From Selaginella moellendorffii (Eukaryota > Plantae > Lycopodiophyta): DNA of 64,000 bases. Positions 25,670 through 57,215 of this stretch are shown here, one piece after another; the first letter of the stretch is position 1; every line of letters begins with the position of its first letter. The stretch covers positions 642,203 to 706,202 of the forward strand of contig NW_003314287.1 of NCBI RefSeq assembly GCF_000143415.4. Reading direction: 5' to 3'. The position numbers and the translations under genes are program-made. The notes beneath the pieces were generated by a model. It was given only the letters and a program-made list of their open reading frames with translations. It had not been told where the DNA came from and did not search any database.

Positions 25670-26406
25670 TTATGGAGTCGCAGCGTGATGATCTTTCCCT
25701 CCTGAACGAATGAAAAGAAGAGCGTCTGCACAGAAAAGAGTGGAAAGTCTATACTGTAGCACCTGATGCCTTGCGACTGTCCTTCGGAGTTGGAGCGGGG
25801 CTGGTCTTTGGAGGAGTTGGACTTGGAGCGGGGCTGGTCTTTGGAGGAGATGGGCTTGGAGCGGGGCTGGTCTTTGGAGATGGACTCGCCTTTGGGCTTG
25901 AACTGGGACTTTCCGTGCATCCTGTTAACAGCAAAACTCTATCAAGTTCATGGTACAAATCGTGGAAGCATGAAAAGTTGGCCAGACAAACCTGGTGGGG
26001 GCGGTCCTGGCAGAAACATGAAAGAAAAATAAAACAGTTAAGCCTGAAAAACCATAGAAAAGAAAGCAGAAGTTGGTATGTATATGGCACCAAATTTACG
26101 TAAAAAGTTTCAGTACATAATCTTGCTGTTAAATTCAAGACCACGGAGCCAGCACCTGGAGCAACAAAACCAAATCAAAGGCTATAGTAGCACAAACTTG
26201 AATTCGAACTTTCACCTGCATCGATCTTGTGCTGCAGCAACAACAAGCAAAGAAAAGATGTTGGCAAGAGTCCCATAGAACACCATGTCAAATACATCAC
26301 AAGAACCTTGGTTTGCTTGACGAACACCAAACTCAGCAGCTCCATCATCCCCAAGACTGCAAACCACAAGACATGAAATCACCAACACCACAAAGACGGC
26401 CTTCAT
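25670..26406 (-). CDS. Secreted Cys/Pro-rich micro-exon gene, copy 1 (exon-3 donor deleted; possibly a pseudogene)
   Basis: Signal peptide [19 protein letters not shown], micro-exons, 3 KTSP repeats; deletion near 26140 removes the normal donor and the third Cys. Confidence 0.5.
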
Positions 26407-26846
26407 CTTGTAGAGACACTGGATGGCTGGCTGAGAAGCAATGTAGGAGGTAAATGCGAATGCATATGCAGGGCCCTGAAGGGGGAATTTATTTTGAACC
26501 AAGGCTAGCAAAACAAAGCCCCTGGAATCACAATGTACGGGGCAGAATCTCAGTTTTTGTTATTCCAAATCATAGCTGGTGGTAACATTCTGCCAGGTTT
26601 ACGAACAAGGTGATATGACCTAAAGCGCATATGATAGTTGTCTTTTTTCCCAAAGAATTTAGAACGTGAAAGAGAATTGTCTGAGGTGATTCCAAATCTT
26701 AGCTGGGTGGCAACAATAGACACAAGTTCTGCCAGGTTTACGAACAAGGTGATATGACCTAAAGCGCATACAGCACAGGGACGTGATAGTTGTCTTGCCT
26801 ATTTTATAGACAATGATTTGGATGTGCAAAGAAACCGATCCAGAGG

Positions 26847-28000
26847 CTAAATTGCAAGAAATTTGTTTAAGCGAAGTACTGCAGCTCGTTTGCCACGAGT
26901 CACATCTCCATGGAGCCTGCAAGCGCTCATCAGAGTTGTCCACCGCATCCGGAAGAAATGGCATGGACTGGATGAGATTCTCGGCCTCCTCCGCTTAGCC
27001 CGCCCAAGCAGATCAACCATGCACCTGTAGTGATGGGTCGATCCCAAAGTCTGATTGAATCGACAGGAAGTGTTCCCTAGCATCAGTGATCTTCCCCGCG
27101 TGGCTGCAACCACTCAGGATTGCGATAAAAGTGATCTCGTCCGGTGAAATCCCTTCGAGATTCATGGCCTGAAACGCATTAATCGCATCTTGCATATGCG
27201 TTTCTGGCAAGTACTGCGATCAAGGCCGTCCACGACCGCTGGTCTTTCCATGGCATATTTTCGAACACTTCATGGGCGCAGCTTACATTACCATTTACGG
27301 AAAATGCAACCATCATTGTAGTATTGTGCACCAGAATTCTGTCAAATATACTCTTCTCTTGCACAAGACACCCATTAAGGGCATAGACTGAGATCATAGC
27401 GTTCCAGGACACTACGTCGTGCAAGGGCATTCGATCGAAGGCTTGAATTGATTCGTCAAATTCACCACAATCGCCATAGCCAGTCAGAAGAACACACCAT
27501 GCAGGGTGATCGCGGAAAGGCATCGAGAGGAACATTCTCTTCGCATCTGTTTGATACCCATCCTATGCACGGGCTGACATTACGGTGTTCCATGCCACGA
27601 CATTCCAACTCGGCATTCTATCCAGGCCTCTTTTGCTTTGAAGGTTTGCATTGCAGTAACAAGTCCACCAGCTAGAGCATTCCAGGATCTTTCTGCTCCA
27701 CAAGAGAAAACAATCTCCACATCTCCTCGAGATTCCCAACTCCGGCATTGCAGAAATCATGCAAGTCCAAGCTGCAACATTGGTCTCGGGCGTCGACTCA
27801 AAGATTATCTTTACCTCAGTTACCCGACCCACATGCGCCAAGACCTGTATCATTGCGTTACTAGACAGAATATCCCACTGTGGCATCCGATCAAAGAGTA
27901 TCATTTCTTCCTGAGTATCCTCTGTTTGGGCATATACTGTAATCATAGTATTCCAAGTAATGACATTCTTTTGAGGCATGTTAAGAAACACAGAAGTAGA
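26847..28000 (-). pseudogene. PLS-class PPR (E-type) pseudogene
   Basis: [56 protein letters not shown] distributed over different frames. Confidence 0.85.
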
Positions 28001-28049
28001 TTCATTTAAGCAACAAGTAGATGCTCAAGATGACTAGGGCCTTTGACCC

Positions 28050-28660
28050 TTGCAATTCAATACTTGAAGATCAAAGCAAGAATGAAAGTGAAGGCTAAAA
28101 TCCCATTCCACATGGTTGAGGTAAATATTAGTGTTGTATACTTAAGCTCTTGTAAGTAGCATAGCTCGCTTACACAAACTCTGTAAAATTGGATATAAAT
28201 TTTCCTCTCTAAATTGTTTCAAATGTTAAAACATTGACAAAACTTACCTAAAGACAGCAAGGAAGAATGTTGCAAACAACATAAGAAAATTGAGACTTAG
28301 TTTCCTCTTCTTGAAAGAAAACAAAAAATAATCCACTAGTGAGTAATATGAACTTAGCAATGCAGAAAGAATGTCACAAACTTTAAATAATATGTCACAA
28401 ACTTTTCCACAAAGAAGGAGAGAAATATCAAAACCAGGAAGCAATTTTTATATATGAATCATAGAACTACCCTTGCCAAAGCAAGACTTTGTAGCTTTCA
28501 AAACCTGCTTGGGCAACAATGAGAACCATATGAAATCTAAGCCGGGAAGAAGGTAATGAGATGGTTGCTCATCGTCAAATAATCTAATATTATTAGCATT
28601 AGCTGTGGGTGGAAGAGGTAATGGAATATATATCTCTTCTAAATCAATAGCAACATCAGA
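28050..28660 (-). pseudogene. WAT1/UMAMIT 5' fragment (first three exons)
   Basis: Degraded copy of ~22825-23435 (IYIPLPLPPTA..., ATFFLAVF). Confidence 0.8.
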
Positions 28661-28839
28661 ACAAGTACAACTCAAATCGCTATATATAACCTTAGAAATT
28701 TACAAAGGTATAAGAAAAGAAAAGATGGGCAAACAGAGCACATAAATCAGGTGTTGGAATTGAAAGTAACATCAAAACAAGTACAACTCAAATCACTATA
28801 TATAATCTCATAAATTAACAAAAGTATAAGAAAAGAAAA

Positions 28840-30029: not shown

Positions 30030-30841
30030 TTATGGAGTCGCAGCGTGATGATCTTTCCCACCTGAACGAATGAAAAGAAGAGCGTTTGCACAGAAAAGAG
30101 TGGAAAGTCTATACTGTAGCACCTGATGCCTTGGGACTGTCCTTCGGAGTTGGGCTTGGAGCGGGGCTGGTCTTTGGAGGAGATGGGCTTGGAGCGGGGC
30201 TGGTCTTTGGAGATGGGCTTGGTGTTGGGCTTGAACTGGGACTTTCCGTGCATCCTGTTAACAGCAAAACTCTATCAAGTTCATGGTACAAATCATGGAA
30301 GCATGAAAAGTTGCCTAGACAAACCTGGTGGGGGCGGTCCTGACAGAAACATGAAAGAAAAATAAAACAGTTAGGCATGAAAAACCATAGACAAACCTGG
30401 CGGTCCTGACAGAAACATGAAACAAAAATAAAACAGTTAGGCATGAAGAACCATAGAAAAGAAAGCACAAGGTTGTATGTATATGGCACCTGCTTCAAAT
30501 TTACGTAAAAAGTTTCAGTACGTGATATTAATCTTGCTGTTAAATTCAAGAGTTTCACCTGGGCATGGCGGCGCACCACGGAGCCAGCACCTGGAACAAC
30601 AAAACCAAATCGAAGGCTATAGTAGCATAAACTTGAATTCAAACTTTCACCTGCATCGATCTTGTGCTGCAGCAACAACAAGCAAAGAAAAGATGTTGGC
30701 AAGAGTCCCATAGAAGACCATGTGAAATGCATCAAAAGAACCTTGGTTTCCTTGACGAACAACAAACTCAGCAGCTCCATCATCTCCGAGACTGCAAACC
30801 ACAAGACATGAAATCACCAATGCCACAAAGACGGCCTTCAT
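30030..30841 (-). CDS. Secreted Cys/Pro-rich micro-exon gene, copy 2 (extra 9-nt exon)
   Basis: Signal peptide; exons of 100/16/32/9/15 nt, repeat exon with 2 KTSP, last exon GGKDHHAATP*; frame continuous. Confidence 0.7.
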
Positions 30842-31705: not shown

Positions 31706-31789
31706 TATAACAGAAGAAAAACAACTTCACGCAAGAGAAACTCTTTCAAGATTAAACTACACTGTAGATTAGCATGATTTCGAAAATGT

Positions 31790-34065: not shown

Positions 34066-34152
34066 AATATAACAGAAGAAAAACAACTTCACACAAGAGA
34101 AACTCTTTCAAGATTAAACTACACAGTGTAGATTAGCATGATTTCGAAAATG

Positions 34153-34949: not shown

Positions 34950-35015
34950 GACGAAAAACCCTAGATGCCCACGCTCGTGTCGAGAATATGCTTTGAGTCC
35001 AAATTTTCAGGGTTC

Positions 35016-36726
35016 ATGGCGCTGGCGCTGCGCTCTCGATCGGCTCTTCGAAAGGCTGCCCCGGCATTTTCATTCCACAGCGGAGCTGAGGCCGCCGGAT
35101 CTGGCGCCGATCGGCGGACTGGAGCCGCCGCCGCGGCGACTGGAGCGGCGATTTTGGCAGCAGTGGCGACGATCTACTCGACCTGGAAGAGCGAGGTGAG
35201 ATCTTTTCTTGTAGCATGCTGCTGCTCATCTTTTTCCTGTGGATTCTGTAAAGACCGCTCGTAGCGACGCTGGGGATTTTGGTTCGTGCTTTGCTTTTTG
35301 CTCGAAAGTTCTAAGTTTTGGTCGTGGTTTGCTCACATTGTCCGTCCAGCATTGGATCCGAACGAATGGCGAAAGTTTCGACTCTTAGAAGCGAAGCCTG
35401 TGACTCACAACACGAGACGTTACAGGCAAGAGGAAAGAAAAAATGGAAAACAAGACGATGCGCTAACGTTCTTTGTATGATTTCGTTGTCCAGGTTTGCC
35501 TTGGATGACGATGCGCAACTGGGTCTTAACGTTGCTTCCTGCCTCTTGACAAAGTAACGGAGCTCCCAAACTTCATGAGGAAGATACGTGAATTTTTCTT
35601 TGCTTTGCAGGGCTGCTATGGGTACGAAAAAGGATGGGAAGCCAAATGTGATCATCAGACCGTATGTAGAATTGTCTTACGCTTGGAATCACTGTAACTC
35701 GTGCTTCGTGCTGACAGATATACGCCCATAAGTGATCCAGACGTTCGTGGTCACTTCGATTTACTTGTGAAGGTATTGTGTTCTTTGTTTTCAGCATTTG
35801 CGTGCTTTCTCAGCTAACGATGAAGAAAACATTTTCTTTGTAGACATACCCCCAAGGAAAAATGAGCAAATATTTTGCTGCTCTTCGGCCCGGAGACACT
35901 TTGGAAATGAAAGGGTACGTGTATTTTACTACATACTTTTTTCCGTCTGTAGTTTTACAAGGAAGATCCACAGTCCTATTCCCAAGCTCCCATACAGCGC
36001 CAACATGAAAGAACGTATCGGCATGGTATATCTTTGAGTTCTCTGCGTCACTTTACTGTCGTTTAGATTGCAGGAGGTACCGGGATCACACCGATGTTTC
36101 AAGTGCTTAACGAGATCTTAAAAAATCCAGAAGATAAAACACAGGTTTGTCTCCAGGAAAAACGTGTCCTCGTAATGTTTCTGCGGCGTTTCCTCCGATC
36201 AGGTCTCGTTGATCTATGCCAACTTGACACCGGACGACATTCTACTCAAGAACGAGCTCGACAAACTAGCTGAAAAGCATCCAAACTTCAAGGTCCTGTT
36301 TGAAGACTATCAGACTTCCACTCTGGTGTTTCCAAGGAAAACTGACGCATGTTTACAGGTTTTCTATGTTGTCGATAAGCCAACGCGTTACTGGGGAGGA
36401 GGATCCGGCTTCATCACGAAAGACATCCTGGTGAAGGGACTACCACCTCCTTCGGACGGCAATCTCATCATGGTTTGAAGCTTATTTGCTGCTCGTTGTT
36501 ACTTAGTTCCCATTGACACAATTTCCAACAGGTGTGCGGGCCTCCAGGCCTCATGAACCACATCTCCGGCGATAAAGCACCAGACAAATCACAAGGACAA
36601 GTAAGCATTTTACAGAGATATCTATTCCAACGGGCGAGCTTCCCTGATTCCACTCTTCCTTCTCAACAGTTGACAGGTCTCTTGAAGAGCATGGGTTACA
36701 CCGAAGACCAAGTGTACAAGTTCTAG
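35016..36726 (+). CDS. NADH-cytochrome b5 reductase, mitochondrial CBR2/MCR1-like, intact
   Basis: Presequence-like MALALRSRSALRK plus a hydrophobic stretch; RPYTPISDPD..GHFDLLVK, IAGGTGITPMFQ, VCGPPG, GYTEDQVYKF*. Confidence 0.9.
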
Positions 36727-36864
36727 GCATTCTTGGACAAGAACAACACAATACAATACAAAGCTCTTTAAAGTCATGAGAGCCGTAGATCAAGGTCCCC
36801 TGAGACGCACTGGCTTATTCCGTGGAGTCATGCCGTGTGCTTATGGAGTCGCAGCGTGATGATC

Positions 36865-37776
36865 TTACCCTCCTGAACGAATGAAAAGAAGAGCGTTTGC
36901 ACAGAAAAGAGTGGAAAGTCTATACTGTAGCACCTGATGCCTTGGGACTGGCCTTCGGAGTTGGATTTGGAGCGGGGCTGGTCCGTGGAGGTGATGGGCT
37001 TGGAGCGGGGCTGGTCTTTGGAGGAGTTGGACTTGGAGTGGGGGTGGTCTTTGAAGGTGATGGGCTTGGAGCGGGGCTGGTCTTTGGAAGAGTTGGAATT
37101 GGAACGGGACTGGTCTTTGGAGGAGTTGGACTTGGAGCGGGGCTGGTCTTTGGAGAAGGGCTTGGTGTTGGGCTCGTCTTTGGAGATGGGCTGGGTGTTG
37201 GGCTGGTCTTTGGAGATGGACTCGCCTTTGGGCTTGAACTGGGACTTTCCGTGCATCCTGTTAACAGCAAAACTCTATCAAGTTCATGGTACAAATCGTG
37301 GAAGCATGAAGAGTTGGCCAGACAAACCTGGTGGGGGCGGTCCTGACAGAAACATGAAACAAAAATAAAACAGTGAAGCCTGAAAAACCATAGAAAAGAA
37401 AGCAGAAGTTGGTATGTATATGGCACCTGCTTCAAATTTACGTAAAAAGTTTCAGTACGTGATATTATCTTGCTGTTAATTCAAGAGTTTCACCTGGGCA
37501 TGGCGGCGTACCACGGAGCCAGCACCTGGAGCAGCAAAACCAAATCAAAGGCTATAGTAGCACAAACTTGAATTTGAACTTTCACCTGCATCGATCTTGT
37601 ACTGCAACAACAAGAAGCAAAGAAAAGATGTTGGCAAGAGTCCCATAGAAGACCATGTCAAATGCATCAAAAGAACCTTGGTTTGCTTGACGAACAACAA
37701 ACTCAGCAGCTCCATCATCCCCGAGACTGCAAACCACAAGACATGAAATCACCAACGCCACAAAGACGGCCTTCAT
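36865..37776 (-). CDS. Secreted Cys/Pro-rich micro-exon gene, copy 4
   Basis: Exons 37776-37677, 37601-37586, 37525-37494, (37429-37427?), 37342-37328, 37257-36934, 36872-36865; all GT-AG; 8 repeat units; tail shortened to GG*. Confidence 0.72.
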
Positions 37777-38264
37777 CTTGTAGAGACACTGGATGGCTGG
37801 CTGAGAGGCAATGCAGGGGGTAAAATGCGAATGCATATGCAGGGCCCTGAAGGGGGAATTTATTTCGAACTACCGGGCAGAATCTCTTTTTTTTTTTCCC
37901 AAGGAATTGACAAGGGAGCCCTTCCAAATCTTAGCTGGGTGGTGACAATAGACACAAGTTTTGCCAGGTTTACGAACAAAGTGATATGACCTAAAGCGCA
38001 TGTGATAGTTGTCGTTTTTCCCAAAGAATTGACGAAAGAGAATTGTCTGAGGTGATTCCAAATCTTAGGTGGGTGGCAACAATAGACAAGGTATCCATAC
38101 TACAATCTGACAATGGATACCTTCGTCCATGAATACCTTACAAGACGAAGCAAGTTCTGCCAGGTTTACGAACAAGGTGATATGACCTAAAGCGCATACA
38201 GTGATAGTTGTCTTGCCTATTTTATAGACAATGATTTGGATGTGCAAAGAAACCGGTCCAGAGA

Positions 38265-39415
38265 CTAAATTGCAAGAAATTTTAAGCGAAGTATGTGCTC
38301 TGCAGCTCGTTTGCCACGAGCCACATCTCGATGGAGCCTGCAAGCGCTCATCAGAGTTGTCCATGCCACCACGTCTGGAAGAAATGGCATGGACTGGATG
38401 AGATTCTCGGTCTCCTCCAGCCGCTTAGCCCGCCCAAGCAGATCAACCATGCACCTGTAGTGATGGGTCGATCCCAAAGTCTGATTGGATCGACAGGAAG
38501 TGTTCTCGAGCATCAGTGATCTTCCCCGCGTGGCTGCAACCGCTCAGGATTGCGATAAAAGTGATCTCGTCCGGTGAAATCCCTTCGAGATTCATGGCCT
38601 GAAACGCATTAATCACATCTTGCATTCGGCCGTTTCTGGCAAGCACTGCGATCAAGGCCGTCCACGACCGCTGGTCTTTCCATGGCATATTTTCGAACAC
38701 TTCAGCTTACATTACCATTTACGGAAAATGCAACCATCATTGTAGTATTGTGCACCAGAATTCTGTCAAATATACTCTTCTCTTGCACAAGACACCCATT
38801 AAGGGCATAGACTGAGATCATAGCGTTCCAGGCCACTACGTCGTGCAAGGGCATTCGATCGAAGGCTTGAATTGATTCGTCAAATTCACCACAATCGCCA
38901 TAGCCAGTCAGAAGAACACACCATGCAGGGTGATCGCGGAAAGGCATCGAGAGGAACATTCTCTTCGCATCTGTTTGATACCCATCCTATGCACAGGCTG
39001 ACATTACGGTGTTCCATGCCACGACATTCCAACTCGGCATTCTATCCAGGCCTCTTTTGCTTTGAAGGTTTGCGTTGCAGTAATAAGTCCACCAGCTAGA
39101 GCATTCAAGGATCTTTCTGCTCCACAAGAGAAAACAATCTCCGAGATTTCCAACTCCGGCATTTGCAGAAATCATGCAAGTCCAAGTTACAACATTGGTC
39201 TCGGGCGTCAACTCAAAGATTATCTTTGACTCAGTTACCTGACCCACATGCGCCAAGACCTGTATCATTGCGTTACTAGACAGAATATCCCACTGTGGCA
39301 TCCGATCAAAGAGTATCATTTCTTCCTGAGTATCCCCTGTTTAGGCATATACTGTAATCATAGTATTCCAAGTAATGACATGCTTTTGAGGCATGTTAAG
39401 AAACACAGAAGTAGA
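38265..39415 (-). pseudogene. PLS-class PPR pseudogene
   Basis: Homologous to 26847-28000, several frameshifts. Confidence 0.85.
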
Positions 39416-39469
39416 TTCATTTAAGCAAAAATTAGATGCTCAAGATGACTAGGGCTTTTGACCCTTGCA

Positions 39470-40100
39470 ATTCAATACCTGAAGATCAAAGCAAGAATGA
39501 AAGTGAAGGCTGAAATCCTATTCTACATGGTTGAGGTAAATATTGGTGTTGTATACTTAAGCCCTTGTAAGTAGCATAGCTTACTTACATAAACTCTGTA
39601 AGATTGAATATAGTTCTTCCTCTCTAAATTGTTTCAAATGTTAAAACATTGACAAAACTTACTTGAACACAGCGAGGAAGATTGTTGCAAATAACATAGG
39701 AAAAATGAGATTTTGTTTTCTCTTCTTGGAAGAAAACAAAAGAAATCCACTAGTGAGTAATATGAACTTAGCAATGCAGAAAGAATGTCACAAACTTTGA
39801 GTAATATGAACTTAGCAATGCAGAAAGAATGTCACAAACTTTTCCACAAAGGAAGAGAGAAATCTCAAAACCAGGAAGCCAAGGCAATTTTTATACATGA
39901 ATCATAGAACTACCCTTGCCAAAGCAAGACTTTGTAGCTTGCAAAACCTGCTTGGGCAACAATGAGAACCACATGAAATCTAAGCCGGGAAGAAGGTAAT
40001 GAGATTGGTTGCTCATCATCAAATAATCTAATATTATTAGCAGTAGCTATAGGTGGAAGAGGTAATGGAACATATATCTCTTCTAAATCAATAGCAACAT
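39470..40100 (-). pseudogene. WAT1/UMAMIT 5' fragment
   Basis: EIYVPLPLPP...SSRLRFHVVLIVAQAGFA, degraded. Confidence 0.8.
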
Positions 40101-40279
40101 TAGAACAAGTACAACTCAAATATATAACCTCAGAGATTTATAAAGGTATAAGAAAAGGAAAGATGGGCAAATAGAGCACATGAATCAGGTGTTAGTATCA
40201 ATAGCAACATCAAAATAAATACAACTCAAATCATTATATATAATCTCATAGATTGACAAAAGTATAAGAAAAGAAAAGA

Positions 40280-40600
40280 TAGCTAAACACAACATATGAA
40301 TTAACTATTGGAAAATGTGTTGAGGTCTTTTGTGGGAAACATGATTTAACAAAGAGTATAGAAAAAGTACTTGCCTTTGTTTTAGTTTACTCACAACTTT
40401 TGTGAGTTTTAGTTTGGCTTTAGTTTGGGTGCTTTATGCTTGTGATTTTTTAGAGGATATGCAAGACAAACTTAAATGGGCAAAGTTGAACATGAGGCAA
40501 GTTCAAAATAAAGACAAAAAATTGGCTAATGAACATTATCATCATCAAGAGTACAAAATTAGTGACAAAGTTTTCCTTAAACTGTCGGATGCACAATGTT
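40280..40600 (+). mobile_element. Ty3/gypsy integrase C-terminal fragment
   Basis: LEDMQDKLKWAKLNMRQVQ...YKISDKVFLKL; homologous to 28840-29225. Confidence 0.6.
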
Positions 40601-40658
40601 CTTTGAAAGGAGGTGGTAGTGATCAATCAGACATTGAAGAAGGTATAGATATTGTTCA

Positions 40659-41284
40659 GATTGCAGGAGGTACCAAGATCACACTGATGTTCCAAGTGCT
40701 TAATGAGATCTTATAAAATCCAGAAGATAAAACACAGGATTGTCTCCAGGAAAAATGTGTCCTCATAATGTTTCTGCAGCATTTCCTCTGATCAGGTCTC
40801 GTTGATCTATGCCAACTTGACACTGGACGACATTCTACTCAAGAACGAGCTCAACAAACTTGCTGAAAACATCCAAACTTCAAGGTCCTGTTTGAGACTA
40901 TCAGACTTCTTGTGTTTCCAAGGAAAACTGATGCATGTTTACAGGTTTTCTATGTTGCCGATAAGCCAATGCGACCGCCTTCATCACGAAAGACCTGGTG
41001 AAGGGACTACCACCTCCTTCAGACGGCAATCTCATCATGGTTTGAAGCTCATTCGCTGCTCGTTACTTAGTTCCCCATTGACACCATTTCCAACAGGTGT
41101 GCGGGCCTCCAGCCCTCATGAGCCACATCTCTGGCGATAAAGCACCAGACAAATCACAAGGACAAGTAACCATTTTACAGAGATATCTATTCCAACACGC
41201 GAACTTCCCTGATTCCACTCTTCTTTCTCAACAGTTGACAGGTCTCTTGAAGAGCATGGGTTAGACCAAGTGTACAAGTTCTAG
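40659..41284 (+). pseudogene. Cytochrome b5 reductase 3' fragment D
   Basis: IAGGTKITLMFQVLNEIL*, frameshifts. Confidence 0.8.
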
Positions 41285-41386
41285 GCATTCTTGGACAAGA
41301 ACAACACAATACAATACAAAGCTCTTTAAAGTCATGAGAGGTCCCCTGAGACGCACTGGCTTATTCCGTGGAGTCATGCCGTGTGC

Positions 41387-42148
41387 TTATGGAGTCGCAG
41401 CGTGATGATCTTTCCCTCCTGAACGAATGAAAAGAAGAGCGTTTGCACAGAAAAGAGTGGAAAGTCTATACTGTAGCACCTGATGCCTTGGGAGTGGCCT
41501 TCGGAGTTGGGCTTGGAGCGGGGCTGGTCTTTGGAGGAGATGTGCTTGGAGCGGGGGTGGTCTTTGGAGGAGATGGGCTTGGAGCGGGGCTGGTCTTTGG
41601 AGATGGGCTTGGTGTTGGGCTTGAACTGGGACTTTCCGTGCATCCTGTTAACAGCAAAACTCTATCAAGTTCATGGTTCAAGTTTGCCCAGACAAACCTG
41701 GTGGGGGTGGTCCTGACAGAAACATGAAACAAAAATAAAACAGTTAAGCCTGAAAAACCATAGAAAAGAAAGCAGAAGTTGGTATGTATATGGCACCTGC
41801 TTCAAATTTACGTAAAAAGTTTCAGTACGTGATATTAATCTTGCTGTTAAATTCAAGAGTTTCACCTGGGCATGGCGGCGTACCACGGAGCCAGCACCTG
41901 GAGCAGCAAAACCAAATCAAAGGCTATAGTAGCACAAACTTGAATTTGAACTTTCACCTGCATCGATCTTGTACTGCAACAACAAGAAGCAAAGAAAAGA
42001 TGTTGGCAAGAGTCCCATAGAAGACCATGTCAAATGCATCAAAAGAACCTTGGTTTGCTTGACGAACAACAAACTCAGCAGCTCCATCATCCCCGAGACT
42101 GCAAACCACAAGACATGAAATCACCAACGCCACAAAGACGGCCTTCAT
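41387..42148 (-). CDS. Secreted Cys/Pro-rich micro-exon gene, copy 5
   Basis: Signal peptide, exons of 100/16/32/15 nt, 3 repeat units, GGKDHHAATP*. Confidence 0.7.
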
Positions 42149-42459
42149 CTTGTAGAGACACTGGATGGCTGGCTGAGAGGCAATGTAGGAGGTAAATGCG
42201 AATGCATATGCAGTGCCCCGAAGCCGGAATTTTATTTCGAACCAAGGCTAACAAACAAAGCCACTGGAATCACAATGTACCGGGCAGAATCTCAGTTTTT
42301 GTTATTTATCCAAAGAATTGACAAGGGAGAACGTGAAAGAGAATTGTTTGAGGTGGAGTGTCCCTTCCAAATCTTAGCTGGGTGGCAACAATAGACACAA
42401 GTTCTGCCAGGTGTACGAACAAGGTGATATGACCTAAAGCGCATAATAGTTGTATAGCC

Positions 42460-42897
42460 TATTTTATAGGATGGCAAAGAAACCGATCCAGAGACTAAAT
42501 TGCAAGAAATTTGTTAAAGCGAAGTATGTGCTCTGCAGTCGTTTGCCACGAGTCACATCCAACAGAGTTGTCCATGCCACCGCATCTGGAAGAAATGGCA
42601 TGGACTGGATGAGATTCTCGGCCTCCTCCAGCCGCTTAGCCCGCCCAAGCAGATCAACCATGCACCTGTAGTGATGGGTCGATCCCAAAGTCTGATTGGA
42701 TCGACAGGAAGTGTTCTCGAGCATCAGTGATCTTCCCCGCGTGGCTGCAACCGCTCAGGATTGCGATAAAAGTGATCTCGTCCGGTGAAATCCCTTCGAG
42801 ATTCATGGCCTGAAACGCATTAATCACATCTTGCATTAGGCCGTTTCTGGCAAGTACTGCGATCAAGGCCGTCCACGACCACTAGTCTTTCCATGGC
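42460..42897 (-). pseudogene. PPR 3' fragment truncated by a transposon
   Basis: [29 protein letters not shown]. Confidence 0.8.
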
Positions 42898-43616
42898 GAA
42901 ATGCTTATCTATTGCCATGTTTACATCCAGTGAAAGGGATGTGATATGGGATAAACTTTTAACTTATAGGAGAATAAGAACTCGATTGATGCTAAGTCTG
43001 ATCGCATTAGAAAAGGACTTGTATGTTGGTGAGAGTATTATAGTAATGAAATTCCAGCACTTTAGAAGTTGGCCATTCGAGTTCTAAGTCAAGCATGCTC
43101 GTCATCCTTAGTGAAAAGATTGTTTAGCACTTTCAAGGATATGTCTTCAAAGAAGAAAAATAAACTTACTATGGACAAGACAGAGGTTGTTAATCTGTAA
43201 TTTGTCATAGATTGTGACTATGACAAATTTGTGAGCTATAATGTAAGAAGACAAACTTAAGTCAGGAGAGGAAGAGGAAGAAGAAGAAGAAAATGGAGAT
43301 GATATCAAAGATTATGAGGTTGAAGATAACAATGATTTGTTTGACAAAGAAAGCTCATTTCTTCCTAGTAAAGACAACAATTAAAACTACTAAACTTGCT
43401 TAGTTGTTTGTAAATTAGTTATTTAGTCTATATAGTTTGTTGGGTGGATTTTTGAGTAGTTTATTTATAATAAAAAGTAGCATATTCCTAGAATTAAAAA
43501 GAGAATATTCTTATAATATCCACTAGAATATTCATGAGCTATTGATCGTGTTCTATAGTCAGGTTCCTGAAATCTAAAGCTCATGTTTGTGTTCTATATT
43601 CGTGTTCATAAGTATG
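42898..43616 (+). mobile_element. hAT transposon 3' remnant (dimerisation domain, acidic tail, putative terminus)
   Basis: PAL*KLAIRVLSQACSSS...RLFSTFKDMSSKKKNKL, Glu/Asp-rich tail, repeated CGTGTTC/TGTTC subterminal motifs. Confidence 0.65.
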
Positions 43617-46600
43617 ATATCAATTATAAACATTATTGTGAGCAAAATGGAGCAAAAGCAAATACTTCTCCCATACTTTTTGTCGAGTCAAGTTTCTTAT
43701 AAAAAACCTCAATACATCTTCTAACAATTGATTCATGCACTTTATCTGCCCATCTAAATGTGAATGCTCACCACTACTCATGTTCAACTTAATTTTTAAC
43801 TTCTCAAATATCATTGCCAAAACTTAAACATGAACTTAGGATCTTGATCAATCACAATATACAATCTACAACTACCAAATAATATTATTTCCTTGAAAAG
43901 TCTTGGGCAAACTAGTGGTAAATTATATTGAGATGTTATCCCAATCATTTTCAAGTATACATAGAGGATAATAGAGGCCAACAAACTTATGATGATCAAC
44001 TTTGACCACTTGCCAAGTCAAACAACCATATACATAGTTTTCAACATCTAACTTTATCCTAGGCAAAACAAAATGCCTCTTCACTAATACATACGTCCTT
44101 AGTACCCCTAGATGCCTAGCATTTATCAACTAAAATCTTTTTAATGAGTTTATCAATATGAGGAATCACTAAATGTCCCTTATTTACCAAGATTTCATTT
44201 CATATCTTGAATGATATAACCTTATCACCCTTTAAATACATAGAGGTATCCCTCAATAAAACCTTCATATTAATATTAGTGATGAAGAAGTTGAAGTCAA
44301 TAAACTCTTTAAACTCATCTAAAAGATTGCTAGATAACTTCATGAATGAGATAAAATTCATTATCTTGAATAATGCATTAGCCATTTTATTGTCATCACC
44401 AAACTTGTACCAGATTTTCACAAATATGTCCTGTAAGAGCTCTTGCCAACCAGTAAAGTGGTCTCAAAGATCCTTTTAATGACTAAAATATTGGAGAGAT
44501 TGATGGTTTGGATCTACATAGAAGTCTGATCCATATAGATAATATTGCCATTCATTCACAATAGCAATCATAGAATACAATGCCTTATCTCGAGTAAGCC
44601 AATTTTATTGTGTGGCATCAAACTTAGATCATGCATTATCAAAGGTATAAACCAATCAATCATGACTTGGATCTTTGTGAGATCATCTTTTATACCATAC
44701 ACTGAAATTGCCTGAGATATCTAATTTCCTCCAAGAAAAACTCATACTTGGATAACTTTGAGTATAGCTTGTTATCACTCAAAAGATGTAAAACACTTCG
44801 CACATGCATCTCATGTTCTACTGTAGAGTTGAACACTAGGATATTAAAGTAGTCGATCACAAATTTCCCCAAATAAGGTTGTAAAACTTAATTTATCAAC
44901 CTTTGAAAAGTTGTAAGAGCATTTATCAAACCAAATGGATTTGATAATACCCTTGCTTCAAATCAATCTTTATAAAATATTGAGCACCATAAAGACAATT
45001 GAGCAAATCATCAATATGAAGTATATTCTTTCACTGTTCTATCATTTAATCCCTTAACCGTTCTAGTTCATATAGAAAAGCCATGTACTTTTTCTTTTTG
45101 ACCATCACCATTGAAGCAGCGTAAAGAGACTTGCTTATCCATAACCACCTCTTTTGAAGGTACTCAGAAAGTTGCCTATTGATTTCATCTTCAAAAGGAC
45201 TAGGGAGAGTCAATTTTTGGTGATAAGGAGTAACTCCAAGAGCTAAGTCAATTTCATGCTAAGTTAGATGGGGCAAACCATTAGGCAATTCATCTGGAAA
45301 TACATCATGGAACTCCTTTTGAATGCAATTCATACAAGCCCTATGCCTACAAATGTACTTTAAATCAGAGTCTTAGATCGAGTACGAGATCGAGTCCAAG
45401 ACCGAGTCTGAGATCGAGTCCAAGACCAACTCTGAGACTGAGTTCGAGATAGAGTCCAGGATCGAGTCCGAGGCCAACTCCGAGACCGAGTCCAAGACCA
45501 ACTCTGAGACTGAGTTCGAGATAGAGTCCGGGATTGAGTCCGAGGCCAACTCCGAGACCGAGTTCAAGGCCAAGTTCGAGACCAAGTTTGAGATAGAGTC
45601 CGAGATCCAAGATCGGGTCCGAGACCGAGTCCGAGGTCCAGTCCGAAGTCGAGTCCGAGATCGAGTCTGAGGTCAAGTCCGAAATCGAGTCCGAAGTTGG
45701 GTCCGAGATTGAGTCTGAGATCGAGTCCGAGACCGAGTCCGAGTACTAATATAGGTCGAGGGGTGAAAGCCTAAAGCATGTGTCTCCCGGGGGGGGGGGG
45801 CTACAGGGGGTTCCAAAAATATAGTAGGGATAGTGAGATCCAAGAACCAATCTTGAAGGAACTCTCTAGTAGTGCTTCCAAACTGACTTGAGGTTGAGAT
45901 TGGGACCGAGGGGCTTTGGGTGGGAATGAGCATGGACTTGGGTGGTGCCAGAGGGGCCACCCAAGGAAGTGCTTAAAAGCAACTCCCACTCCTGGAAGGG
46001 AAATCTACTGTAATGCTCCCGGCTCATGTGGAGTGGTGCCCCACTTGAGTACCTTGTGGCTCATTGGTCCTCACCCTTCCTAAGGGCTTGGGTCTTCCCT
46101 TTGGGATGGAAGTGGGGGGGTAAAGGTACCCATCCTGGGCAATTAGGCCATAGTGTTTTGCCCCGGTGTCCTGAAGCAAGTGGTGCACCCGAGGCTTGGG
46201 ATTTAAAGGGTCCTATGATTAAATCTTGTTATACCAAGGGATGTTAAGAACTTTGAGGCTTGGTGTGCTTGGTTGCTTGTGCTTGCGGGGAGTATAGCCG
46301 AACCTTAAGTCCAGTCTAACTTGGGGAGGGGGATTAGGAGAGATTTAGGAATCCATGGATGGATACCTAACACTCCATTGCTTGTGCAGTGAGTAGTTGA
46401 AACCAAGTAGGACCAAGTAGAAGCTAGTACAATATACGAGAATCTTGGCAAGGGAACTTAGCTAAAAGCCAAGGCAGTGTTGGGCGGATAGACAAGGTAG
46501 GTTGGCAAATTGGAAAGGAAAACTTTGTGGCTTACAACTTCCTCACCATGTGACCATATCTTTAGTCACTACACAAGAGGATTGCTCCTCTTCCTTTCCA

Positions 46601-47520
46601 CAGTCTGAGACATTTCAAAACACCATGGCCCTATACAAGCCTTATGGGTACTCTTTGCAGCTTCTACTCTTATGTGCTCAAGCCATGTGGCTAAAGTGAG
46701 GTTCTGATAAGCCACATTAGGTATTTAAATAGATAATGTCACCTACACTTGAATTAGGAGCATTGACTATTCGATCTCCTGCTAGAGCTAACTCTTAAAC
46801 ACTTCACCAAGTTATCCCATTTATCCATTTGTATTCATTCTAGCCTTGAACTCCTCAATGGTTATATCATCACCCACCACATGGGTATAACTTGGATATG
46901 CAACTTTCAGGACACCCAAATTTCCCACCGTCCAGAGAAGCGATCCATGTGATCGATGCAAAGTTTGGCATATCATATTTGTTTATGGACAGCCTAGGAC
47001 GGTTCCTTGATCACACTGCCCTTTTTTAGCTAAATTAGTTCCACTAAAGTCCTCCCCCCTACTATCCTTTTGAAGCTCACTAAACCCCTTAGGGTTTGAG
47101 AAATTATTGCTTTTGGCTTTCACCCTCAAATTCAGACTTAGACTCAAACTTAGACTCGAACTCAAACTCAGACTTGGTCTTAGTCTCAATCTCGGTCTTG
47201 GTCTTAGTCTTAGTTCTAGTTTCGGTCCCCATCTTAAATTCCTTCTCAAACTTCATTTTAAACTCTATTTTAGACTCATTCTTGGACTCTATCTTGAACT
47301 CCTTCTTAAACTCTTTTTTGTGTCCTTTTTTAGAGATTTATTCACTGATTGTGTCATACTCATTCCTTGAGCATTTTATTTGGAGTTCCACTCCCGCTTT
47401 TGACTTTTTGAGTTAGAACTTTTGGTCCAAATATATTACACTTGTTAAACTTCCACTTCGAATATTACTATATGGCACCTTTTCGGCTCCACTCTAGGGC
47501 TTAGGGATTTGTGTCTCACA
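43617..47520 (-). mobile_element. Degenerate Ty3/gypsy LTR retrotransposon internal region (gag-RT-integrase); no LTRs recognised
   Basis: EFHDVFPDELPNGLP..HEIDL, FGLINALTTFQRL, LYSKLSKYEFFLEEIRYL, HLGVLRTY...GCLTWQVVK, DQDPKF, DGQ..MNQLLEDVLR; RT precedes integrase. Confidence 0.85.
45365..45745. repeat. Degenerate 6/12-bp tandem repeat (GAGTCCGAGATC/GAGACC) inside the retroelement
   Basis: Direct inspection; produces low-complexity DS/LG/RT ORFs. Confidence 0.9.
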
Positions 47521-49487
47521 ATCAAACACTTATATCCATGATGGATTCCATGATATTCATCTTAACATTCTTTAATCCCTTCACAAAAGGATAATCCTTG
47601 CTTTGATGTTCAACCTTGTGGCAATGAAAATAATTATCCTTCATCTTATCTTTCCCATTAGTCTAAACGAAGTTTCTTAGCCTTATTGCCATCTCCTTTC
47701 TTTGAGCCACAACGCAGTAATGGTCATTTCTTCCCTAAATGTGAAGCATTAATTAGTTGATCATCACGTTGACTACCCTGTTGACCATCCCATTGACCAT
47801 AGTTGATTGACAGTTTTGACAAAAAGATCTAATAGCATCAATTAATATTCCTAGAAAATCCTTCTTGACCTTTTATTACACATTTAATAAGCTCAAACCT
47901 TTAATGAAATATTGCACCTTTAATAGCTTATTATAGGTGCCTATGAAAATGCGAAACTTGCAGGCATACACATTTAAAGATAAAGTGCTTTACTTGATCT
48001 TTAGTGATTAACCTCTTCAAAATTCTTGATAAATGAAGTGCAAAAAGCTTTTGTCAAATCACTCCAAAAACTTGATTTTAGATTAACTTTGATGTAGTTT
48101 TTCCACGCCACAAAAAAGCATGTGTAAGCTTCCTCATAAAAAAACAATCTTCACCTTGTTTTCACAAGAATTGTATGATTAACAACTTTTCCATGAGTCC
48201 AACTAACAATCAACCTTTTGGTTATCATAAATATCTAATTGTGACTTCCATTCCATAATACTATAATCCTTGGCATGTTTAACATACCAATGGTAATCAT
48301 GAATATAAGATTGATTCAACCTTTAAGCGTCAATATGAAATAACCTTAATGAAATTGATGAAATCTTGCTTTAAGCTTTAGTAATTTGGCATCCTTGCTA
48401 CACAATGACATTATCAAGAGTCTCTTCCTTTTTGTCATGGCCATCATTATTAAAGCTATACACCTCATCAAGATATATATTTTGCTTATTTCCCATCTTG
48501 AAAAGAATATTACTAATGAAATGCATGAAGAGCAAACCCTAGGCTAACCTTAAGCTATAAACAATTCTTGGAATATTCCTGCAGTTTGTGTCATGTTGCT
48601 AATTGGTCACACTTAATGTCCATTACAATACTTTGAAGAATTGACATTAAATTAGCTAAAGAAGAACACATTTAAAACATATTTATTTAAAACTCTCTCT
48701 TATAAATAAGAATATTAAATACAGCTAAAAATTAATTAAAATATGTACTCCTATAATTATAAATATTCTTATATTTAATAATTTTTAAGTAGGCATTTTT
48801 CTTAACCACATTAAATTTTTTCTCTTAAACATTTAAAATGATCAAAATGATGAAATGATCAAATAATTTATTTATATTAAATTTCAGACTCTATACTTAC
48901 TATCCACAAAACTATTTTTAATGATAATAATAAACTTATTTTGTTTGTTTATTTTTATTTTTATATTTTATATAGTTCACAAAATGAGAGAACAGTCTTT
49001 AACTTTTTATTATTTTATAATTATGTGACTCTATGCACTCACACTTACAATTAATTTGTAAACATTTAAATTTGTAAAGAAAGTGAAAATATTAAATAAT
49101 AATATATTTTTATTATTTTATATATATTTTAATTTGAACAAATTTAAATTTGGAGGAGATCAATCTTCTCACTACAATAAATAATTTATCCAAACTCATT
49201 TGAAAATGAATTACATGCTCTGGTATATCTAAAAATAATAAAATACTTTTAATAACTATTAAGATTTATAGAATAGGTAAAAATAATTTATTTTATTTAC
49301 AATTTTATATTTAAAGTAATAAAAAAATTAAATTTTTAGCCACAATCAATAATTGATTATTTTTATTTATGATGGTCTAATAATAAATATATCATATATC
49401 AATTAATTTTTTCCTGGTTATTAAAATATTTTAAAATAATTTAAGTTATAAAATAATTTAAATACTGGATAATTTGTACTTTTACAC
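47521..49487. mobile_element. Unclassified degenerate repeat with a very AT-rich end, probably a DNA transposon remnant
   Basis: Duplicated at 62460-64000; part recurs at ~24000-24180; no intact ORF. Confidence 0.4.
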
Positions 49488-51493: not shown

Positions 51494-51631
51494 GCATTCT
51501 TGGACAAGAACAACACAATACAATACAAAGCTCTTTAAAGTCATGAGAGCCGTAGATCAAGGTCCCCTGAGACGCACTGGCTTATTCCGTGGAGTCATGC
51601 CGTGTGCTTATGGAGTCGCAGCGTGATGATC

Positions 51632-52545
51632 TTACCCTCCTGAACGAATGAAAAGAAGAGCGTTTGCACAGAAAAGAGTGGAAAGTCTATACTGTAGCAC
51701 CTGATGCCTTGGGACTGGCCTTCGGAGTTGGATTTGGAGCGGGGCTGGTCCGTGGAGGTGATGGGCTTGGAGCGGGGCTGGTCTTTGGAGGAGTTGGACT
51801 TGGAGTGGGGGTGGTCTTTGAAGGTGATGGGCTTGGAGCGGGGCTGGTCTTTGGAAGAGTTGGAATTGGAACGGGACTGGTCTTTGGAGGAGTTGGACTT
51901 GGAGCGGGGCTGGTCTTTGGAGAAGGGCTTGGTGTTGGGCTCGTCTTTGGAGATGGGCTGGGTGTTGGGCTGGTCTTTGGAGATGGACTCGCCTTTGGGC
52001 TTGAACTGGGACTTTCCGTGCATCCTGTTAACAGCAAAACTCTATCAAGTTCATGGTACAAATCGTGGAAGCATGAAGAGTTGGCCAGACAAACCTGGTG
52101 GGGGCGGTCCTGACAGAAACATGAAACAAAAATAAAACAGTGAAGCCTGAAAAACCATAGAAAAGAAAGCAGAAGTTGGTATGTATATGGCACCTGCTTC
52201 AAATTTACGTAAAAAGTTTCAGTACGTGATATTAATCTTGCTGTTAAATTCAAGAGTTTCACCTGGGCATGGCGGCGTACCACGGAGCCAGCACCTGGAG
52301 CAGCAAAACCAAATCAAAGGCTATAGTAGCACAAACTTGAATTTGAACTTTCACCTGCATCGATCTTGTACTGCAACAACAAGAAGCAAAGAAAAGATGT
52401 TGGCAAGAGTCCCATAGAAGACCATGTCAAATGCATCAAAAGAACCTTGGTTTGCTTGACGAACAACAAACTCAGCAGCTCCATCATCCCCGAGACTGCA
52501 AACCACAAGACATGAAATCACCAACGCCACAAAGACGGCCTTCAT
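51632..52545 (-). CDS. Secreted Cys/Pro-rich micro-exon gene, copy 6 (near-identical to copy 4)
   Basis: Same exon structure and 8 repeat units as copy 4. Confidence 0.7.
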
Positions 52546-53033: not shown

Positions 53034-54185
53034 CTAAATTGCAAGAAATTTTAAGCGAAGTATGTGCTCTGCAGCTCGTTTGCCACGAGCCACATCTCGA
53101 TGGAGCCTGCAAGCGCTCATCAGAGTTGTCCATGCCACCACGTCTGGAAGAAATGGCATGGACTGGATGAGATTCTCGGTCTCCTCCAGCCGCTTAGCCC
53201 GCCCAAGCAGATCAACCATGCACCTGTAGTGATGGGTCGATCCCAAAGTCTGATTGGATCGACAGGAAGTGTTCTCGAGCATCAGTGATCTTCCCCGCGT
53301 GGCTGCAACCGCTCAGGATTGCGATAAAAGTGATCTCGTCCGGTGAAATCCCTTCGAGATTCATGGCCTGAAACGCATTAATCACATCTTGCATATGGCC
53401 GTTTCTGGCAAGTACTGCGATCAAGGCCGTCCACGACCGCTGGTCTTTCCATGGCATATTTTCGAACACTTCAGCTTACATTACCATTTACGGAAAATGC
53501 AACCATCATTGTAGTATTGTGCACCAGAATTCTGTCAAATATACTCTTCTCTTGCACAAGACACCCATTAAGGGCATAGACTGAGATCATAGCGTTCCAG
53601 GCCACTACGTCGTGCAAGGGCATTCGATCGAAGGCTTGAATTGATTCGTCAAATTCACCACAATCGCCATAGCCAGTCAGAAGAACACACCATGCAGGGT
53701 GATCGCGGAAAGGCATCGAGAGGAACATTCTCTTCGCATCTGTTTGATACCCATCCTATGCACAGGCTGACATTACGGTGTTCCATGCCACGACATTCCA
53801 ACTCGGCATTCTATCCAGGCCTCTTTTGCTTTGAAGGTTTGCGTTGCAGTAATAAGTCCACCAGCTAGAGCATTCAAGGATCTTTCTGCTCCACAAGAGA
53901 AAACAATCTCCGAGATTTCCAACTCCGGCATTTGCAGAAATCATGCAAGTCCAAGTTACAACATTGGTCTCGGGCGTCAACTCAAAGATTATCTTTGACT
54001 CAGTTACCTGACCCACATGCGCCAAGACCTGTATCATTGCGTTACTAGACAGAATATCCCACTGTGGCATCCGATCAAAGAGTATCATTTCTTCCTGAGT
54101 ATCCCCTGTTTAGGCATATACTGTAATCATAGTATTCCAAGTAATGACATGCTTTTGAGGCATGTTAAGAAACACAGAAGTAGAT
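53034..54185 (-). pseudogene. PLS-class PPR pseudogene
   Basis: Near-identical to 38265-39415. Confidence 0.85.
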
Positions 54186-54239
54186 TCATTTAAGCAAAAA
54201 TTAGATGCTCAAGATGACTAGGGCTTTTGACCCTTGCAA

Positions 54240-54870
54240 TTCAATACCTGAAGATCAAAGCAAGAATGAAAGTGAAGGCTGAAATCCTATTCTACATGGT
54301 TGAGGTAAATATTGGTGTTGTATACTTAAGCCCTTGTAAGTAGCATAGCTTACTTACATAAACTCTGTAAGATTGAATATAGTTCTTCCTCTCTAAATTG
54401 TTTCAAATGTTAAAACATTGACAAAACTTACTTGAACACAGCGAGGAAGATTGTTGCAAATAACATAGGAAAAATGAGATTTTGTTTTCTCTTCTTGGAA
54501 GAAAACAAAAGAAATCCACTAGTGAGTAATATGAACTTAGCAATGCAGAAAGAATGTCACAAACTTTGAGTAATATGAACTTAGCAATGCAGAAAGAATG
54601 TCACAAACTTTTCCACAAAGGAAGAGAGAAATCTCAAAACCAGGAAGCCAAGGCAATTTTTATACATGAATCATAGAACTACCCTTGCCAAAGCAAGACT
54701 TTGTAGCTTGCAAAACCTGCTTGGGCAACAATGAGAACCACATGAAATCTAAGCCGGGAAGAAGGTAATGAGATTGGTTGCTCATCATCAAATAATCTAA
54801 TATTATTAGCAGTAGCTATAGGTGGAAGAGGTAATGGAACATATATCTCTTCTAAATCAATAGCAACATT
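54240..54870 (-). pseudogene. WAT1/UMAMIT 5' fragment
   Basis: Near-identical to 39470-40100. Confidence 0.8.
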
Positions 54871-55049
54871 AGAACAAGTACAACTCAAATATATAACCTC
54901 AGAGATTTATAAAGGTATAAGAAAAGGAAAGATGGGCAAATAGAGCACATGAATCAGGTGTTAGTATTGATAGCAACATCAAAATAAATACAACTCAAAT
55001 CATTATATATAATCTCATAGATTGACAAAAGTATAAGAAAAGAAAAGAT

Positions 55050-55370
55050 AGCTAAACACACCATATGAATTAACTATTGGAAACTGTGTTGAGCTCTTTT
55101 GTGGGAAACATGATTTAACAAAGAGTATAGAAAAAGTACTTGCCTTTGCTTTAGTTTACTCACAACTTTTGTGAGTTTTAGTTTGGCTTTAGTTTGGGTG
55201 TTTTATGCTTGTGATTTTTTAGAGGATATGCAAGACAAGCTTAAATGGGCAAAGTTGAACATGAGGCACGTTCAAAATAAAGAAAAAAAATTGGCTAATG
55301 AACATTATCATCATCAAGAGCACAAAATTAGTGACAAAGTTTTCCTTAAACTGTCGGATGCACAATGTTC
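55050..55370 (+). mobile_element. Ty3/gypsy integrase C-terminal fragment
   Basis: Duplicate of 40280-40600. Confidence 0.6.
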
Positions 55371-55428
55371 TTTGAAAGGAGGTGGTAGTGATCAATCAGA
55401 CATTGAAGAAGGTATAGATATTGTTCAG

Positions 55429-56053
55429 ATTGCAGGAGGTACCAAGATCACACTGATGTTCCAAGTGCTTAATGAGATCTTATAAAATCCAGAAGATAAA
55501 ACACAGGATTGTCTCCAGGAAAAATGTGTCCTCATAATGTTTCTGCAGCATTTCCTCTGATCAGGTCTCGTTGATCTATGCCAACTTGACACTGGACGAC
55601 ATTCTACTCAAGAACGAGCTCAACAAACTTGCTGAAAACATCCAAACTTCAAGGTCCTGTTTGAGACTATCAGACTTCTTGTGTTTCCAAGGAAAACTGA
55701 TGCATGTTTACAGGTTTTCTATGTTGCCGATAAGCCAATGCGACCGCCTTCATCACGAAAGACCTGGTGAAGGGACTACCACCTCCTTCAGACGGCAATC
55801 TCATCATGGTTTGAAGCTCATTCGCTGCTCGTTACTTAGTTCCCCATTGACACCATTTCCAACAGGTGTGCAGGCCTCCAGCCCTCATGAGCCACATCTC
55901 TGGCGATAAAGCACCAGACAAATCACAAGGACAAGTAACCATTTTACAGAGATATCTATTCCAACACGCGAACTTCCCTGATTCCACTCTTCTTTCTCAA
56001 CAGTTGACAGGTCTCTTGAAGAGCATGGGTTAGACCAAGTGTACAAGTTCTAG
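55429..56053 (+). pseudogene. Cytochrome b5 reductase 3' fragment F
   Basis: Duplicate of 40659-41284. Confidence 0.8.
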
Positions 56054-56155
56054 GCATTCTTGGACAAGAACAACACAATACAATACAAAGCTCTTTAAAG
56101 TCATGAGAGGTCCCCTGAGACGCACTGGCTTATTCCGTGGAGTCATGCCGTGTGC

Positions 56156-57215
56156 TTATGGAGTCGCAGCGTGATGATCTTTCCCTCCTGAACGAATGAA
56201 AAGAAGAGCGTTTGCACAGAAAAGAGTGGAAAGTCTATACTGTAGCACCTGATGCCTTGGGACTGGCCTTCGGAGTTGGGCTTGGAGCGGGGCTGGTCTT
56301 TGGAGGAGATGGGCTTGGAGCGGGGGTGGTCTTTGGAGCAGATGGGCTTGGAGCGGGGCTGGTCTTTGGAGATGGGCTTGGTGTTGGGCTTGAACTGGGA
56401 CTTTCCGTGCATCCTGTTAACAGCAAAACTCTATCAAGTTCATGGTACAAATCGTGGAAGCATGAAAAGTTGGCCAGACAAACCTGGTGGGGATGGTCCT
56501 GGCAGAAACATGAAACAAAAATAAAACAGTTAAGCCTGAAAAACCATAGAAAAGAAAGCAACTACCTCTTCCAAATCAAAAAGGGAAGGGATTTACCGTC
56601 AACTAGCATTGTAGCTCCCATCACTATGCCAGCCCTGACCAAGGAAAAGGAAGAGATGCACCTTGAAGCATCTTGCCAACTGCTATATTTGATCCTGCCC
56701 TCGCCCCTGCCAAGAATAAACAAGGTTAATATGCATCAAATGCCCTGCTCACCACTATCCTATAGCAGTGTCCAGCATTGCCCAAGTATCATGCTGCTGC
56801 AATGGGAAACTTAACTTGCTTTTTAGCATTGCCCTAGCACAGAAGTTGGTATGTATATGGCACCTGCTTCAAATTTACGTAAAAAGTTTCAGTACGTGAT
56901 ATTAATCTTGCTGTTAAATTCAAGAGTTTCACCTGGGCATCTCGACGTACCACGGAGCCAACACCTGGAGCAGCAAAACCAAATCAAAGGCTATAGTAGC
57001 ACAAACTTGAATTTGAACTTTCACCTGCATCGATCTTGTACTGCAACAACAAGAAGCAAAGAAAAGATGTTGGCAAGAGTCCCATAGAACACCATGTCAA
57101 ATGCATCAAAAGAACCTTGGTTTGCTTGACGAACAACAAACTCAGCAGCTCCATCATCCCCGAGACTGCAAACCACAAGACATGAAATCACGAACGCCAC
57201 AAAGACGGCCTTCAT
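56156..57215 (-). CDS. Secreted Cys/Pro-rich micro-exon gene, copy 7 (~280-bp intronic insertion)
   Basis: Signal peptide, exon 3 CWLRGTSRCP, 15-nt exon GPSPP, 3 repeat units, GGKDHHAATP*. Confidence 0.68.

Follow-up and report, generated by a model that had tools for sequence, protein, structure and literature searches.

The 64,000-nucleotide (nt) stretch of Selaginella moellendorffii DNA analyzed here (hereafter the window; contig NW_003314287.1, positions 642,203 to 706,202) corresponds to scaffold GL377591.1 and carries seven minus-strand copies of a short gene whose product combines a predicted signal peptide, four cysteines, and a Pro/Ser/Thr-rich stalk. The start codons lie at positions 57215, 52545, 42148, 37776, 33001, 30841, and 26406, and each copy is named after the position of its ATG; a RefSeq family member maps to this scaffold at the positions of c52545 and c37776. 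An initial annotation had presented all seven as carriers of the same micro-exon series, which is correct for six intact copies, while c26406 lacks the donor site of exon 3. The copies other than c37776, which is broken down by exon further below, are:

56156..57215, minus strand: c57215, intact, 119 amino acids, most divergent Cys loop (three substitutions)
51632..52545, minus strand: c52545, intact, 164 amino acids, in the 14.8-kb segmental duplicate
41387..42148, minus strand: c42148, intact, 119 amino acids
32103..33001, minus strand: c33001, intact, 168 amino acids, 15-nt exon doubled, transcribed
30030..30841, minus strand: c30841, intact, 111 amino acids, shortened duplicate micro-exon plus 15-nt exon
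25670..26406, minus strand: c26406, damaged, end of exon 3 and its donor lost, stub starting at 26155

The intact copies share one architecture, in which exons of 100, 16, 32, and 15 nt precede the stalk exon (132-324 nt) and the last exon. All introns are GT-AG; they measure 75, 60, 69-434, 53-70, and 61 nt and have phases 1, 2, 1, 1, and 1. All six spliced models are open and encode products of 111-168 amino acids. For c37776 this architecture reads as follows:

37677..37776, minus strand: exon 1 (100 nt), predicted signal peptide (approximately residues 1-19) and a short acidic linker, phase-1 end
37586..37601, minus strand: micro-exon 2 (16 nt), phase 1 to 2, Cys38; letters present in contigs of RNA runs X1-X4
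37494..37525, minus strand: micro-exon 3 (32 nt), phase 2 to 1, Cys40, Trp41, and Cys48; joints in X3 and X4
37328..37342, minus strand: micro-exon 4 (15 nt), symmetric phase 1, Gly and four Pro in the Cys3-Cys4 loop
36934..37257, minus strand: stalk exon (324 nt), Cys56, then about eight 33-nt Pro/Ser/Thr/Lys repeats
36865..36872, minus strand: coding part of the last exon, stop after two codons; intron 36872/36934 spliced in four runs

The uniform exon series proposed initially fits the six intact copies except at its fourth position, where c33001 has two 15-nt exons (32635-32649 and 32563-32577) that stem from a 72-bp intron-exon tandem duplication and c30841 has exons of 9 nt (30397-30405) and 15 nt (30325-30339) that stem from a 66-bp intron-exon duplication. 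Only the 15-nt exon is symmetric among the three micro-exons, and it is therefore the sole one that can be gained or lost in frame. Its duplication, which lengthens the spacer between the third and fourth Cys from 7 to 10 or 12 residues, is the variable feature of the family. A ~280-bp insertion within intron 3 of c57215 (inside 56499-56932) occurs in no other copy. The short tail claimed for the family exists in five non-identical copies, while in c37776 and c52545 the stop comes after two codons of the last exon, which leaves almost no tail; the others read eight codons more. In the damaged c26406, a 24-nt deletion has removed the exon-3 donor, so that the four-Cys motif cannot be spliced normally; the frame could be rescued only through a candidate cryptic donor and at the cost of the third Cys.

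Splicing and transcription of the family

Splicing was read from contigs of four probable RNA runs (X1-X4, one from each of four studies) over positions 36650-37950. That these runs are RNA is a guess of the tool used, and spliced joints are not expected from DNA; the contigs inform neither on levels nor on transcript starts or strand, and no single one covers the mRNA from end to end. When the four runs are combined, all five splice joints are seen: exon 1 to exon 2 in X1 and X2, exons 1-2-3 and 3-4-5 in X3 and X4 (where the letters of the micro-exons lie between the aligned sides), and removal of intron 5 in X1, X2, X3, and X4. No exon-skipping joint appeared in these contigs, which lose rare forms. 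The predicted passage through the 16-, 32-, and 15-nt exons into the Pro/Ser/Thr frame is thus borne out by the contigs and by RefSeq protein XP_024538199.1, an independent model with the same joined peptide as the spliced window models. Openness of alternative stalk-exon frames is uninformative because, at a T content of only 11-12%, all three frames are open.

Spliced transcripts exist for at least two copy types. Exon 1 of the c37776 type is present in the contigs, and contigs of X1-X3 also show exon-1 alleles at 37727 and 37756 in a combination that is unique to c33001 among the twelve copies of both haplotypes (see below). In one X1 contig the 15-nt exon occurs twice, with the extra one placed between the genomic 15-nt exon and the stalk exon; both duplicates can therefore be spliced in together.

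Some low-depth contigs keep introns 1 and 2. Intron 1 (37602-37676 and equivalents) is 75 nt long, in frame, and free of stops in the six intact copies, and its retention, represented by low-depth contigs in X1 and X4, would insert a hydrophobic 25-residue segment. We rejected a designed membrane anchor (19-residue hydropathy 2.15), given that T-rich introns read as hydrophobic and that the retained X1 contigs are of low depth. An upstream ATG used by some RefSeq models was likewise set aside, being in frame in just four of the seven copies.

The family had been described as hidden, which is true of a plain list of open reading frames but not of RefSeq, where spliced proteins already exist. 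XP_024538199.1 and the isoforms XP_024538195.1 and XP_024538196.1 (with two and one 15-nt exons, respectively) are correctly spliced and come from the allelic scaffold GL377599.1; XP_024535606.1 belongs to the family as well. None of the names given to them (DDB_G0290521-like, alpha carbonic anhydrase 8-like, LRR extensin-like) is backed by a matching domain, and the names are misleading. On the window side, RefSeq models are partly wrong, with an extra exon or fusions to PPR genes, and c42148 and c57215 have no gene call in the mapping of GL377591.1. Two models that join family exons to PPR sequence (XP_024538032.1 and XP_024535903.1) are probably wrong or read-through products.

With the splice forms at hand, the initial comparison with the micro-exon genes (MEGs) of Schistosoma, a diversification device, can be weighed; in a system of that kind, alternative use of micro-exons would create many secreted isoforms. 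The two systems share a secreted product (predicted here), clustered duplicates, and very short coding exons including a symmetric one of 15 nt, which is duplicated in c33001, c30841, and one allelic copy and for which RefSeq holds isoforms with one or two exons (XP_024538196/5); joint skipping of exons 2 and 3 (48 nt) would also preserve the frame. However, Schistosoma MEGs have 10-20 very short, mostly symmetric exons and introns of 0.1-5 kb (bioRxiv 10.1101/2023.06.21.545858), whereas the genes here have three micro-exons, two of them asymmetric, and introns mostly of 53-153 nt (one of 434 nt). No skipping was observed in the contigs, from which rare forms drop out, there is no excess of amino acid changes and no homology to MEGs, and each gene could yield two or three loop variants at most. 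We therefore consider MEG-like diversification very improbable and infer that the micro-exons are mostly ordinary compact-genome architecture. In S. moellendorffii such exons are common, with 270 of 15 nt or less, 17% of which were annotated in v1.0 (PMC8831610).

Haplotypes and duplication history

We take scaffold GL377599.1 as the allelic haplotype because the flanking genes EamA, DUF3611, and CLU are common to both scaffolds. It carries five copies (four intact, one degenerate) compared with seven in the window, and over both haplotypes 10 of 12 copies are intact, with one damaged copy on each. The suggestion of an expanding family is borne out in that the family has expanded recently; mean divergence is ~4.6% both within and between haplotypes, the values of the two doubled-exon copies being inflated by misalignment. 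The proportion of nonsynonymous differences (pN, 0-0.058) never exceeds that of synonymous ones (pS, 0-0.096) in 15 pairs compared over the N-terminal 64 codons, which offer few sites. Each of the four intact copies on the other haplotype encodes Thr46, whereas no window copy does, a pattern that points to homogenization within a haplotype. The allelic copy that adjoins UFC1, as c33001 does, also has a doubled 15-nt exon.

The degenerate copy of the other haplotype (L004:10001-10870) has a TG in place of the AG acceptor of intron 1, a Trp in place of Cys40, and a fourth exon of 18 nt. An exon-3 variant resembling it occurs unspliced and at low depth in run X2, and synteny suggests that its counterpart lies just past the right end of the window.

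Four of the window copies are related through a large duplication:

35072..49049, no strand assigned: first unit of the 14.8-kb segmental duplication, partner 49890-64000

Its units are 93-98% identical overall, 93-95% in the flanks, and ~100% over 36660-40103 (3.4 kb); c52545 and c57215 lie in the duplicate of c37776 and c42148, and the coding sequences of c37776 and c52545 are identical. The ~100% middle stretch is compatible with gene conversion, although it may have arisen in assembly. Both units also contain a ~1.9-kb element (45370-47320 and ~60620-62300) that carries an array of 12-bp repeats at either end, in inverted orientation, and resembles a non-autonomous foldback/Mutator-type transposon.

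The unit duplicated across the family consists of a family gene and an upstream PPR fragment, often with part of a convergent cytochrome b5 reductase-like gene and pieces of UFC1 and EamA. PPR fragments lie upstream of every copy on the minus strand (26723-28958, 31195-31712, 33362-34074, 38151-39400, 42398-42897, 52920-54169, and 57464-58150). A convergent plus-strand gene with FAD/NAD-binding domains (34968-36726; PF00970 and PF00175), the C-terminus of which we take to be like that of NADH-cytochrome b5 reductase, ends ~140 nt from the c37776 stop. The 3' untranslated regions of the two genes probably overlap as natural antisense because RNA contigs run through the spliced ends of both. Elsewhere in the window, a 2.1-kb tandem duplicate of 77% identity (8964-11073 and 11523-13679) overlaps a 732-codon open frame without Pfam match.

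This setting could mean that the array is a largely neutral by-product, in which a single functional orphan gene rode along each time the local block (with its fragments of PPR, cytochrome b5 reductase, UFC1, and EamA) was duplicated, and in which assembly partly inflated the count of seven. The company of PPR and reductase fragments, the damaged copy on each haplotype, and the position of c37776 and c52545 within the ~100% identical 3.4-kb stretch would be expected from such a history. We nevertheless regard it as improbable: frame and splice sites are kept by 10 of 12 copies while most of their co-duplicated neighbors are truncated, spliced transcripts come from two or more copy types, and the two units of the 14.8-kb duplication are 5-7% different in their flanks.

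A putative wall glycoprotein with a four-Cys tip

Residues 1-19 look like a signal peptide, as initially proposed; the prediction uses the N-terminal hydropathy profile, with a basic n-region, a 14-residue hydrophobic core (11-residue hydropathy 3.1-3.4; peak 3.2 for exon 1 of c37776), and small residues at -3/-1. An atypical region (residues 20-56) follows that is non-PAST (PAST standing for Pro, Ala, Ser, and Thr) and holds the pattern C-x-C-x7-C-x7/10/12-C, with Cys at 38, 40, 48, and 56/59/61 and a span of 19-24 residues. Across the ten intact copies of the two haplotypes, neither the Trp nor any of the four Cys varies. Behind them extends the stalk, the length of which differs by whole repeats between copies.

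The view that this stalk resembles hydroxyproline (Hyp)-rich glycoproteins or arabinogalactan proteins (AGPs) is supported. Total PAST is 51-65% and stalk PAST 77-85%, with a glycomodule index of 0.48-0.53 and 26-58 modules in 111-168 residues, and the family products thereby pass all numeric thresholds for non-classical/chimeric AGPs (>90 amino acids, total PAST at least 42%, partial PAST at least 55%, glycomodule index at least 0.15, and at least five glycomodules; PMC5266747). They share with this class a PAST-rich region with dense AP/PA/SP/PS/TP/PT glycomodules and an extra atypical region, and their predicted signal peptide would fit it too, but the extra region is an unclassified four-Cys motif and not a fasciclin, phytocyanin, or nsLTP domain. 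No glycosylphosphatidylinositol (GPI) anchor signal was found, the C-terminal 20 residues being hydrophilic (mean hydropathy -1.2 to -1.5), and the products have no N-glycosylation site. Extensins and Lys-rich classical AGPs are similar as basic, repetitive, Pro/Ser-rich wall-type proteins. However, SP3-5 motifs are absent from the mature proteins, as is any Tyr that could form isodityrosine cross-links, which sets them apart from extensins, and Lys-rich classical AGPs carry their Lys in a block, not one per repeat, and a GPI signal.

Searches placed the family nowhere else, in line with its initial description as undescribed. Orphan status holds for the libraries searched, in which other Selaginella are perhaps poorly represented, and a 40-residue query finds only fairly close kin. 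Sequencing runs under three further, coded organism labels shared 14-43% of the words. The stalk exon matched a single S. moellendorffii RefSeq protein (P0001), and residues 1-62 of P0001 retrieved five proteins, all from S. moellendorffii. The Cys tip or N-terminal region had no relative outside this species in 90% and 50% cluster libraries, Pfam, the PDB, and the ESM Atlas, and a short-candidate search with the N-terminal region gave no match. Among 1.84 billion representatives, phmmer listed three Selaginella proteins and two matches that we rejected as repeat-inflated and lacking the Cys pattern, namely an animal-type model of 2100 residues that contains 25 repeated stretches and a DUF11 repeat protein of bacterial type. 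Pfam assigned P0001 to no family (PRIMA1 only at E=0.53), a tyrosinase match in the PDB (E=0.72) was put down to chance, and the best ESM Atlas score (0.78) lies under the level that shuffled proteins often reach. The family accessions are named in no paper of the literature searched, and three short single-exon motifs were not found in the accessible part of the supplements of the AGP survey PMC5266747.

The mini-domain of the initial annotation is a putative one. Its motif indeed matched no described family in these searches. A single-sequence AlphaFold model (a helix with an extended tail, predicted TM score 0.41) is uninformative; it had no Foldseek match and a best fold-comparison Z of 3.2. 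That 7, 10, or 12 residues are tolerated between Cys3 and Cys4 would be easier to reconcile with a loop closed by a disulfide than with a compact fold.

The tip, with its Cys, Trp, and Arg, could be the active part of a defense or recognition protein, e.g., as an antimicrobial peptide, lectin-like binder, or receptor ligand that is displayed on, or cleaved from, a glycosylated stalk, with array turnover and loop-length variants tuning its specificity. By analogy, the architecture parallels the defensin-polyproline-linked proteins Art v 1, Amb a 4, and Par h 1, which are known only from Asteraceae pollen and carry a Hyp-O-glycosylated Pro-rich tail (PMC5771466), in being secreted (predicted here) with an N-terminal Cys-rich head before a Pro-rich tail. 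The Cys stretch is also basic and contains a Trp, and the copy-number variation, the haplotype-wide replacement in the Cys loop, and the three loop substitutions of c57215 would suit such a role. However, those proteins have an eight-Cys defensin domain, as opposed to four Cys here with no match to a defensin or other Pfam family, PDB sequence, or fold; pN<pS, and the tips are near-identical across copies. The defense or recognition role raised by the initial annotation thus gains nothing beyond copy-number turnover, and we think it unlikely. A bolder version would have the tip as a new disulfide-closed recognition module that sits on an AGP stalk and is homogenized per haplotype, its loop size being adjusted as the 15-nt exon is gained, lost, or alternatively included; the family would then parallel, on a small scale and in a plant, the variation of secreted recognition proteins through micro-exons. 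This we regard as a long shot.

On balance, we favor the reading that these genes probably encode a Selaginella-specific family of GPI-less, non-classical (chimeric) AGP-type wall glycoproteins with a disulfide-bonded tip. SP, TP, and AP dipeptides and Pro runs are Hyp-glycosylation motifs. After cleavage of the signal peptide around Gly19, the stalk Pro in SP/TP/AP would be hydroxylated and O-glycosylated to form an extended rod, on which a Lys every 11 residues might bind acidic pectin. The four Cys could pair into two disulfides, which would either draw the tip into a small noose or join one chain to another, and the product would serve as a structural or adhesive component of the apoplast, while its tandem array may turn over via unequal crossing-over or gene conversion. 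Several points weigh against this reading. Secretion, hydroxylation, glycosylation, and disulfides are all predictions from sequence, to which the structure model adds no information, and Cys conservation is not strong evidence because the copies are too young, at the divergence given above. The stalk glycans may also be extensin-type arabinosides instead of large arabinogalactans because the stalk is rich in Pro, Ser, Thr, and Lys, poor in Ala, and contains Pro pairs.

The family is uncharacterized, yet the kind of protein is familiar. It represents an apparently abundant group of putative lycophyte wall glycoproteins, which surveys of whole genomes might overlook or label wrongly, and several RefSeq models are corrected. 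It also offers a clean and young case in which an intron-exon tandem duplication alters a protein loop in frame, together with copy-number and sequence differences between the two haplotypes of one plant. Its weight would rise if the Cys tip were truly a binding or defense module.

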